From Octopus sinensis (lineage: Eukaryota): 64,000 nt of DNA. Below the pieces are notes generated by a model. It was not told the DNA's origin and searched no databases. It worked only from the letters and a program-made list of their open reading frames with translations. Within the stretch, counting starts at the first letter, position 1, and each line of letters starts with the position of its first letter. This document shows, piece by piece, positions 47,373 to 49,070 of the stretch. The position numbers were made by a program, and so were the translations under genes. The DNA lies in assembly GCF_006345805.1 (NCBI RefSeq), contig NC_043023.1, positions 12,710,001 to 12,774,000 of the forward strand, read 5' to 3'.

Positions 47373-48245
47373 TGTTTGTGCAGGTCACTACTGTGAGAGA
47401 ATGATTTACCACAGATATTACAATGATATGGCTTCTCTCCTGTATGAATACGTTTGTGACTGATCAAATTGCTATTATCAGAAAATGTCTTACCACAGAT
47501 ATCACAGTGATATGGTTTTTCCCCAGTATGTATACGTTTGTGTTTAGGTAAGTCACTACTGTAAGTGAATGATTTACCACAGATATTACAACAATATGGC
47601 TTCTCTCCTATATGAATACGTAGGTGTCTGGTTAAATGGCTATTTTCAGAGAATGATTCACCACAGATATCACATTGATATTGCTTCTCTCCTGTATGAG
47701 TACGTTTGTGCCCTTTTAAAGAAGAAGGCTGAGAAAATGATTTGCCACAGATATCACACTGATATGGCTTCTCTCCTGTATGAATACATTTGTGCCCTTT
47801 TAAAGAAGAAGGCTGAGAAAATGATTTACCACAGATATCACAATTGTATGGCTTCTCTCCTGTATGAATACGTTTGTGATCAGTTAAAATGTTACTTCTA
47901 GAAAATGATTCACCACAGATATCAGATTGATATGGCTTCCCACCTGTATGAATATGTTTGTGCCTTTTTAAAGAAGAAGGCTCAGAAAATGATTTGCCAC
48001 AGATATCACACTCATATGGCTTCTCTCCTGTATGAGTACGTTTGTGCCCTTTTAAAGAAGAAGGCTGAGAAAATGATTTACCACAGATATCACAATGGTA
48101 TGGCTTCTCTCCTGTATGAATACGTTTGTGATCAGTTAAAATGTTACTTCTAGAAAATGATTTACCACAGATATTACAATGATGGGGCTTTCCTCCTGTA
48201 TGAGTACGTTTGTGTTTAGGTAAATCAGCACTTCGAGAAAATGAT
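47373..48245 (-). pseudogene. Inverted C2H2 finger array (about 10 fingers, open frame, no ATG) inserted in the ZF-6 leader
   Basis: Minus strand reads without frameshift or stop: helices [87 protein letters not shown]. Flanked by a 70-bp direct duplication (47308-47377 and 48241-48310). Confidence 0.93.
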
Positions 48246-48443
48246 GATGAACCTACAGGTTAAGTTTGAGTAACTTTACAAAAGAGTTAACCAATTTATA
48301 TCTTCTGTTTTAGATATTAAGCAAGATCACCAATGAAAGTAACATAACATTTAATTATTCTCTGATGCATTTGAACACAAATATTCATAGAAATGAAACA
48401 GATACTATCATTGTGATATGTATAACGAAATTATTCTCTCATT

Positions 48444-49070
48444 ATGAATAATTCAACTAAAGCAAAAATCTCTGATAAAAGAGAGAAGCCATATCACTGT
48501 GATATCTGTGGTAAGTCATTCTCTAAAACTGGTAATCTAAGAATGCACAGACGTGTTCATACTGGAGAAAAACCATATCAGTGTGATATCTGTAGTAAAT
48601 CATTTTCTGGAAAATGGCACTTTAACTCGTCACAAATTTATTCATACTGGGGAAAAGCCGCATCAGTGTGATATCTGTGGTAAATTATTCTCTCAAATTA
48701 GTCACTTGACTGAACACAAACGTGGTCATAAGGAGAGAAGCCATTCCATTGTGATATCTGTGGTTAATCATTCACTATAGTCATTTGACTAGACATATAC
48801 GTATTCATAATGGGGAAAAACCATATCAATGTGATAACTGGTGAATCATTCTCTGAAATTAGCAATTTCACCAGACACCTACGTATTCATACAGGAGAGA
48901 AGCCATATCATTGTGATATCTGTGGTAAATCATTCTCTCACAGTAGTGACTTGCCTAAACATAATCGTATTCATACTGGGGAAAAACCATATCATTGTGA
49001 TATCTGTGGTGAGTCATTCTCTCAAAAGCGCCACTTAAGCACACATCTGAGTATTCATACACAGGTCTAA
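48444..49070 (+). pseudogene. ZF-6: short degenerate C2H2 gene (7 finger units, several indels)
   Basis: Standard MNNSTK start and HTQV* end. First frameshift at about 48610. 627 bp versus 633 expected for 7 fingers. Confidence 0.88.

Follow-up and report, generated by a model that had tools for sequence, protein, structure and literature searches.

A 64-kb stretch of the Octopus sinensis genome (contig NC_043023.1, positions 12,710,001 to 12,774,000; 38% G+C), which is referred to here as the window and in whose coordinates all positions are given, contains seven units in tandem on the plus strand, each ~8-9 kb long and closed by an array of C2H2 zinc fingers. The sixth of these units, ZF-6, is set apart by an 863-bp block of finger sequence in antisense orientation, which stands upstream of its own broken finger array and is bracketed by two copies of a 70-bp target site that its siblings carry only once. 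On balance, and with modest confidence, we read this as a neutral inverted templated insertion into the 5' untranslated region (5'UTR) of ZF-6, that is, as a real rearrangement whose host is a zinc-finger (ZNF) pseudogene. In our view, the element arose as a by-product of turnover in the cluster and is selectively neutral, with a regulatory potential that is latent, not demonstrated.

The inverted block and its junctions

The ZF-6 unit comprises the following parts.

44740-44883, plus strand: core promoter with non-coding exon 1, both putative
46682-47307, plus strand: 5'UTR exon that follows the acceptor TTTCTATTTCAG/AATATAAC and shares 95.5-97.7% identity with its counterparts in the six siblings
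47308-47377, plus strand: upstream copy of the duplicated target site (ATGATGATGAACC...TCTTCTGTTT)
47378-48240, minus strand: inverted insert of C2H2 fingers, 863 bp, 10.3 units of 84 bp
48241-48310, plus strand: downstream copy of the duplicated target site, 69/70 identical to 47308-47377
48311-48443, plus strand: remaining 5'UTR up to the ATG, within the loop of the predicted hairpin
48444-49070, plus strand: ZF-6 sense array, a pseudogene of 7 fingers that would supply the 3' arm of the hairpin

No other antisense finger block was found in the window by a scan for conserved finger cores, which counted 117 cores, i.e. 107 on the plus strand and 10 on the minus strand, all 10 of the latter at 47400-48187. 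The minus-strand translation of the block contains 10 zf-H2C2_2 stretches (Pfam), and 204 bp separate its end from the ZF-6 ATG (48444). The initial annotation of this locus, which had been made from the sequence by eye and had spoken of ~870 bp of antisense sequence with ~10 fingers ~200 bp before the ATG, was thus close to the mark. It was also right in describing ZF-6 as a short, frameshifted pseudogene: there are 7 fingers as compared with 15-22 in the siblings and, relative to ZF-5, indels of +1, -1, -4 and -2 nt plus an in-frame TAA within 630 bp. The block itself has no indels whereas the adjacent sense array has these four, which speaks for the latter being real and not sequencing noise. 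Read on the minus strand, the block is open for 298 codons. It has no in-frame ATG, however, and its frame is closed by stops directly outside both junctions (48260-48262 and 47363-47365), which together mark it as a copied fragment and not a gene. Both ends are cut mid-finger, leaving the first and last fingers truncated, and the interior contains a private 252-bp (3-finger) amplification, with one finger type present three times plus a close variant.

A feature that the initial annotation had not described is the 70-bp direct duplication on either side of the block. Sibling units align to 46601-47377 and resume from 48241. The 70-mer is single-copy in each of ZF-1 to ZF-5, where it is followed directly by TAGATATTAAGC (AGATATTAAGC in ZF-4), and it is single-copy with an internal deletion in ZF-7. 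Its single-copy state in five siblings reveals an A-inverted insert-A structure in ZF-6 and defines the duplication to the base. Divergence between the two copies is 1/70 (95% confidence interval 0.04-7.7%). When the empty sites of the siblings are compared with the finger consensus, a short microhomology is seen at each junction: GTTT on the left, shared by the target ...CTGTTT and the antisense finger ...CGTTTGTG..., and ATGAT on the right, shared by the antisense finger ...GAGAAAATGATTTACC and the target ATGATGATG....

The block boundaries show no terminal finger, 3'UTR, poly(A) tail, A-run or terminal inverted repeats (TIRs), and the sense 3' end of the insert (47378) falls inside a penultimate finger. 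Two common routes of insertion were considered and rejected. A processed retrocopy mediated by a long interspersed nuclear element (LINE) should have brought a poly(A) tail and an mRNA 3' end to the insert boundary, where there is neither, and a DNA transposon does not match a duplication of 70 bp or ends that are mid-finger cuts without TIRs.

Template-switch insertions are commonly explained by fork stalling and template switching or microhomology-mediated break-induced replication (FoSTeS/MMBIR), or by the action of polymerase theta. The 70-bp duplication, the inverted orientation and the 4-5 bp of microhomology at each junction together fit a microhomology-mediated insertion of the FoSTeS/MMBIR or polymerase-theta type, an assignment that is based on anatomy plus these established models. 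In such an event, (i) the nascent strand would have left its template at ...CTGTTT and primed on the GTTT of an inverted finger array, (ii) ~863 bp would have been copied from the opposite strand of this paralogous array, adding ~10 fingers to the 5'UTR exon of ZF-6, and (iii) the strand would have re-annealed via ATGAT, 70 bp behind its departure point.

Donor and alternative origins

Finger by finger, the block tracks the middle-to-penultimate fingers of the siblings, with their order kept. Its best full-length match within the window is nevertheless only 81%, with per-finger matches from ~83% to 98%, and the sense arm of ZF-6 itself reaches 86-87% in the best registers. Since the genes in the window match the block at 81% at most, although the two 70-mers differ at 1/70, the donor must be elsewhere or have been lost, and an unseen paralogue outside the window is the probable source. 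A search of 5.8 billion proteins with the translated insert (288 aa) was dominated by generic ZNFs; its best cephalopod match was 60% identical, and it yielded no donor. Exact-protein look-ups with ZF-2, the antisense open reading frame (ORF) at 47569-47901, the N-terminal ORF of ZF-6 and a neighbouring transposase ORF found none of them on record, and a homology search with the same antisense ORF for gene calls on read-level contigs found nothing.

Several points weigh against a neutral templated insertion. The donor template was not found in the 64-kb window; ZF-6 is oddly short, with 7 fingers instead of 15-22, for which the model needs a separate deletion; a ZF-6 promoter that is conserved almost perfectly, together with an insert whose frame is cleanly open, would suit a locus still in use as well; and transcription, exon status and editing at ZF-6 are properties that we infer. 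To these must be added the prospect of an assembly or library artefact, in which a chimeric or misjoined read would have put a reversed ZNF piece into ZF-6. The cluster is highly repetitive, with 84-bp finger repeats in ~90% identical units, and it is in such regions that assemblers err. However, misassemblies usually join sequences via long shared repeats, whereas the junctions here lie in unique 5'UTR sequence and share 4-5 bp. Moreover, the 70-bp duplication that frames the block is clean, with a single difference between its copies, and the insert copies nothing in the window, so that a simple fold-back read is not at issue. An artefact is therefore unlikely.

A different alternative accepts the rearrangement but moves the donor into ZF-6 itself, the middle fingers of whose own array would have served as template in an inverted fold-back switch, the resulting long palindrome having then provoked the loss of these fingers from the sense array and so produced its short, 7-finger form. 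The finger counts are compatible with this idea, since 6.9 sense plus 10.3 antisense fingers make ~17, within the sibling range of 15-22, and the mid-array finger types of the block are missing from the ZF-6 sense array. The last unit of the block also finds its best match in the penultimate finger of ZF-6 (62/66), but this is indistinguishable from the 61/66 of other siblings, and just upstream of that finger identity falls to ~75%. The overlapping parts are 86-87% identical as compared with 99% for the 70-mers, and two events would be required. An own-array donor is accordingly rather improbable, and less likely than an unseen paralogue. Its cut-and-paste variant, a plain inversion of the ZF-6 array, was rejected, because the block contains the penultimate finger, which the sense array nonetheless retains in full.

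The ZF-6 transcript and its predicted hairpin

The promoter and exons of ZF-6 were assigned from conservation and motifs. The putative core promoter carries TGACGTCA twice, at 44750-44757 and 44783-44790, and TATAA at 44802-44806, and the putative exon 1 that goes with it is ~80 nt long, with a GT donor starting at 44884. This promoter/exon-1 block is near-invariant in all seven units (ZF-6 differs by one 1-bp deletion), whereas the DNA around it is ~90-93% identical between units. The strong acceptor at 46681/46682 is present in ZF-6 too, so the insert does lie downstream of a conserved putative promoter and of an acceptor, as had been claimed initially. From this conservation we infer that the promoter still drives a transcript across both arms.

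The insert is probably exonic, i.e. part of the 5'UTR exon. Homology to an O. vulgaris locus (OX597842.1; ~75-77% DNA identity, 5'UTR included) begins exactly at the acceptor TTTCAG/AATATCA and runs unbroken to the ATG at ~80% identity, and upstream of this acceptor the sequence is unalignable with the O. vulgaris relatives, which is the pattern to be expected of a single exon made of 5'UTR plus coding sequence. Downstream of the block, 48241-48443 is identical to the siblings at 197-200 of 203 positions. The 5'UTR also contains a ~404-bp tandem duplication (46665-47068 vs 47069-47377 plus 48311-48365), which is common to the siblings; the O. vulgaris relatives have a single copy of this unit, and in the second copy the acceptor CAG reads CAT in ZF-6 and ZF-1.

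The initial annotation had also allowed that use of an alternative acceptor at ~48313 would make the insert intronic. The mini-intron in question would run from a donor-like CAG/GTTAAG (47326, inside the 70-mer) to an acceptor-like TTTAG at 48313, and it is unlikely, since O. vulgaris lacks its donor and ZF-7 has lost it by deletion. In the latter unit, a deletion of ~12 bp (60260-60275) takes ACCTACAGGTTA from the 70-mer, including the donor-like CAG/GT, which argues against an essential role of this site as a splice donor. Antisense finger arrays are, in themselves, rich in cryptic splice signals, and cryptic splicing could therefore trim the arm. Consensus donors occur within the antisense fingers at 47548 (TTTAG/GTAAGT, which is the antisense reading of 'SDLPKHK' finger codons) and 48220 (AG/GTAAAT), and the left insertion junction has created an acceptor-like TCTTCTGTTTGTGCAG/G at 47384. 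No poly(A) signals (AATAAA, ATTAAA) are found on the plus strand of the block.

If it is made, the ZF-6 RNA is predicted to form an imperfect hairpin of ~480 bp. RNAfold assigns to 47373-49070 a minimum free energy of -776.4 kcal/mol, as compared with -393.4±7.4 kcal/mol for 12 dinucleotide shuffles, -370 to -388 kcal/mol for five sense-only stretches from siblings and -382 kcal/mol for the same region with the block flipped to sense. The predicted structure consists of a 5' arm (47377-48145), a loop of 301 nt (48146-48446) and a 3' arm (48447-49043, 81% paired), joined by 481 arm-to-arm pairs (451 Watson-Crick and 30 G-U) in 55 stacks. The longest uninterrupted helix measures 34 bp and eight helices are at least 19 bp long, with an arm-to-arm complementarity of only 74-87%. 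The imperfect duplex of ~600 bp foreseen in the initial annotation thus corresponds to 481 pairs over a 3' arm of ~600 nt. The complementarity to the siblings that it had postulated is there as well: for 431 of the block's 843 21-mers, one or more sibling sense arrays contain the exact complement, and in every full-length sibling there are 51-71 exact matches that run for 21 nt or more.

The same stability is, however, readily obtained with other fragments of the family. When 24 antisense pieces of 863 bp, drawn at random from the sibling arrays, took the place of the block, the folds reached -808±29 kcal/mol with 400-537 arm-to-arm pairs, and the real block folds slightly worse than the mean of these pieces. 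That random antisense pieces fold as well makes the hairpin an automatic outcome of the shared 84-bp scaffold, and pairing no better than theirs gives no sign of selection for pairing.

As for the likely fate of such an RNA, ADAR activity is heavy in cephalopods. In an octopod, ZF-6 RNA would be expected to be mainly hyper-edited by ADAR and/or retained in the nucleus and degraded, as a non-coding RNA, and not to be diced into small interfering RNAs (siRNAs) of the Drosophila type. Two studies describe adenosine-to-inosine hyper-editing in Metazoa as following the abundance of double-stranded RNA (PMC5625713, PMC9989829). ADAR editing would be the expected fate of the RNA, if made, but it is a passive fate and no evidence of a regulator. 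Dicing is disfavoured by a survey of 43 lophotrochozoans, which reported loss of DICER2 in Trochozoa and of siRNA-class Argonaute in Mollusca, a diverged helicase DECH box in cephalopod Dicer and no endogenous siRNA (endo-siRNA) signature in a mollusc small-RNA library (PMC11114477). The reported losses of Dicer-2 and siRNA-class Argonaute weaken the analogy with Drosophila hairpin RNAs (hpRNAs). Antisense gene fragments in a transcribed unit could also yield antisense PIWI-interacting RNAs (piRNAs), a route that is without support here.

It is in this light that a functional hairpin or antisense locus, i.e. a ZF-6 transcript that has been kept to regulate sibling ZNF mRNAs, should be judged. 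It would act through piRNA-type or non-canonical Dicer-1 small RNAs, or by recruiting or titrating ADAR. Much of the above could be marshalled in its favour: the promoter/exon-1 block is conserved in ZF-6 as in the siblings, the insert is probably exonic and its plus strand is devoid of poly(A) signals, the fold is very stable (eight unbroken helices reach 19 bp or more, one of them 34 bp), 431/843 21-mers have exact sibling targets and there is a precedent in the D. simulans hpRNAs Nmy and Tmy (PMC10292708). Yet (i) the pairing is not above that of random antisense sibling fragments, (ii) the arms derive from separate genes, with a complementarity of only 74-87%, (iii) the canonical endo-siRNA machinery is reported absent in molluscs (PMC11114477), (iv) there is no second antisense block in the seven units, (v) the 1/70 divergence allows a young insertion, with little time for selection, and (vi) strong cryptic donors such as AG/GTAAGT at 47548 could splice out part of the arm. 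A locus kept for this function is thus very unlikely, and a touch more doubtful still is a new-born one, in which the RNA of the dead copy would act on the whole neighbouring family via small RNAs or ADAR. The silencer into which, according to the initial annotation, a dead paralogue may have turned is for now a hypothetical one. Finally, it is scarcely credible that the block is a coding exon of a minus-strand gene. Its frame does stay open through all of its fingers, unlike that of the broken sense array next to it, but this is what a young copy should show in any case, the 70-mers having diverged at 1/70, and the block has no in-frame ATG, stops at both junctions and first and last fingers that are truncated mid-finger.

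The wider cluster and comparison with known systems

Beyond the insert, the window contains the following features.

Near 5926, 12759, 20752, 30966, 39505, 48481 (ZF-6) and 60485, plus strand: starts of the seven finger arrays
56569-57522, minus strand: ISXO2-like DDE transposase ORF, intact, 317 aa (PF12762, E = 5e-15), between ZF-6 and ZF-7
49286-49596, 42802-43323, 34784-35005, 14240-14447 and 52391-52665: GC-rich tandem repeats with a period of ~62 nt (GGCACGTAAAAGCACC...), 3' of ZNF units
45140-45330: element resembling a miniature inverted-repeat transposable element (MITE) in the first intron of ZF-6, with terminal inverted repeats GGTACTACTAGCGAACAG ... CTGTTCGCTAGTAGTACC

The cluster extends past the edge of the window, as is evident from a partial finger at 33-64. 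ZF-2 (12722-14026, 434 aa) is the only fully open frame among the units, and frameshifts are present in five of the six siblings of ZF-6 (5889-7150, 20752-22224, 30921-32812, 39468-40728 and 60448-61872), so that much of the cluster may be pseudogenic, or some arrays may contain indel errors of assembly. A query with the N-terminus of the family returned 20 proteins, and all 15 of those with a species name are from Octopus. Across the seven units, identity is ~99-100% in the promoter/exon-1 region (44690-44900), 95.5-98% in the 5'UTR exon (46601-47377), ~90-93% in intergenic DNA and only 76-89% in the coding finger arrays, a gradient that reflects constraint or homogenisation of the 5' non-coding parts alongside divergence of the fingers. 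On either side of the transposase ORF lie G/C-rich tandem repeats of 117-150 bp (55436-55943 and 58353-58578). The repeats with a ~62-nt period yield long spurious minus-strand ORFs, such as the one at 49242-49922 (226 aa, no Pfam hit), and the MITE-like element has copies in other units that match in reverse orientation.

A neutral templated insertion into ZF-6 offers a clean, base-resolved example of how a tandem zinc-finger cluster is rearranged, in which a single event instantly yields a long potential hairpin with complementarity across an entire gene family. Were its RNA made and processed, a hairpin regulator would here have arisen from a dead paralogue in a lineage other than insects and mammals, and the locus would test whether cephalopods use long endogenous double-stranded RNA for purposes beyond editing. 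If that RNA also acted on the neighbouring family, it would be the first hairpin regulator directed at a gene family in molluscs, for which the classical siRNA pathway is reported missing. On present evidence, it is an ordinary structural variant with an interesting predicted consequence.

The closest parallels in structure are the FoSTeS/MMBIR and polymerase-theta insertions at tandem-duplication junctions, in which an inverted templated segment likewise sits between short target copies. Shared with these are the 4-5 bp of microhomology at both junctions and a donor in a nearby paralogous repeat family, with the difference that templating in ZF-6 is deduced from family membership, the donor locus not having been recovered in the window.

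Drosophila hpRNA loci are the closest parallel in potential. Nmy and Tmy of D. simulans are de novo hpRNAs, whose inverted repeats match the fast-evolving family that they silence (PMC10292708). ZF-6 shares with such loci an inverted repeat in one (here putative) transcription unit that is complementary to a paralogous family with fast turnover, and it has trans targets with extended perfect complementarity in the sibling sense arrays. It differs in that its arms stem from different paralogues and are 74-87% complementary instead of 'highly complementary', and in that its host phylum is reported to be without Dicer-2 and AGO2-class proteins (PMC11114477). Since the functional hallmarks of an hpRNA (small RNAs and machinery) are either not in evidence or disfavoured, ZF-6 is not filed under this class.

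In mouse oocytes, pseudogene-derived inverted repeats reportedly act as endo-siRNA precursors, as is said to have been described in 2008 by Tam and colleagues and by Watanabe and colleagues. The resemblance to ZF-6 lies in a dead copy with an inverted duplicate, which can pair in cis and with the mRNAs of the parent family, but the mouse system depends on an oocyte-specific Dicer isoform, and we know of nothing comparable in cephalopods. The last relevant group is that of ADAR substrates formed by inverted repeats in UTRs, such as inverted Alu pairs and other young metazoan repeats, with which ZF-6 would share a long imperfect intramolecular duplex in non-coding transcript sequence, here a predicted one; duplexes of this kind are the standard target of ADAR. 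While those substrates are built from transposon copies, the arms of ZF-6 are finger arrays derived from genes.

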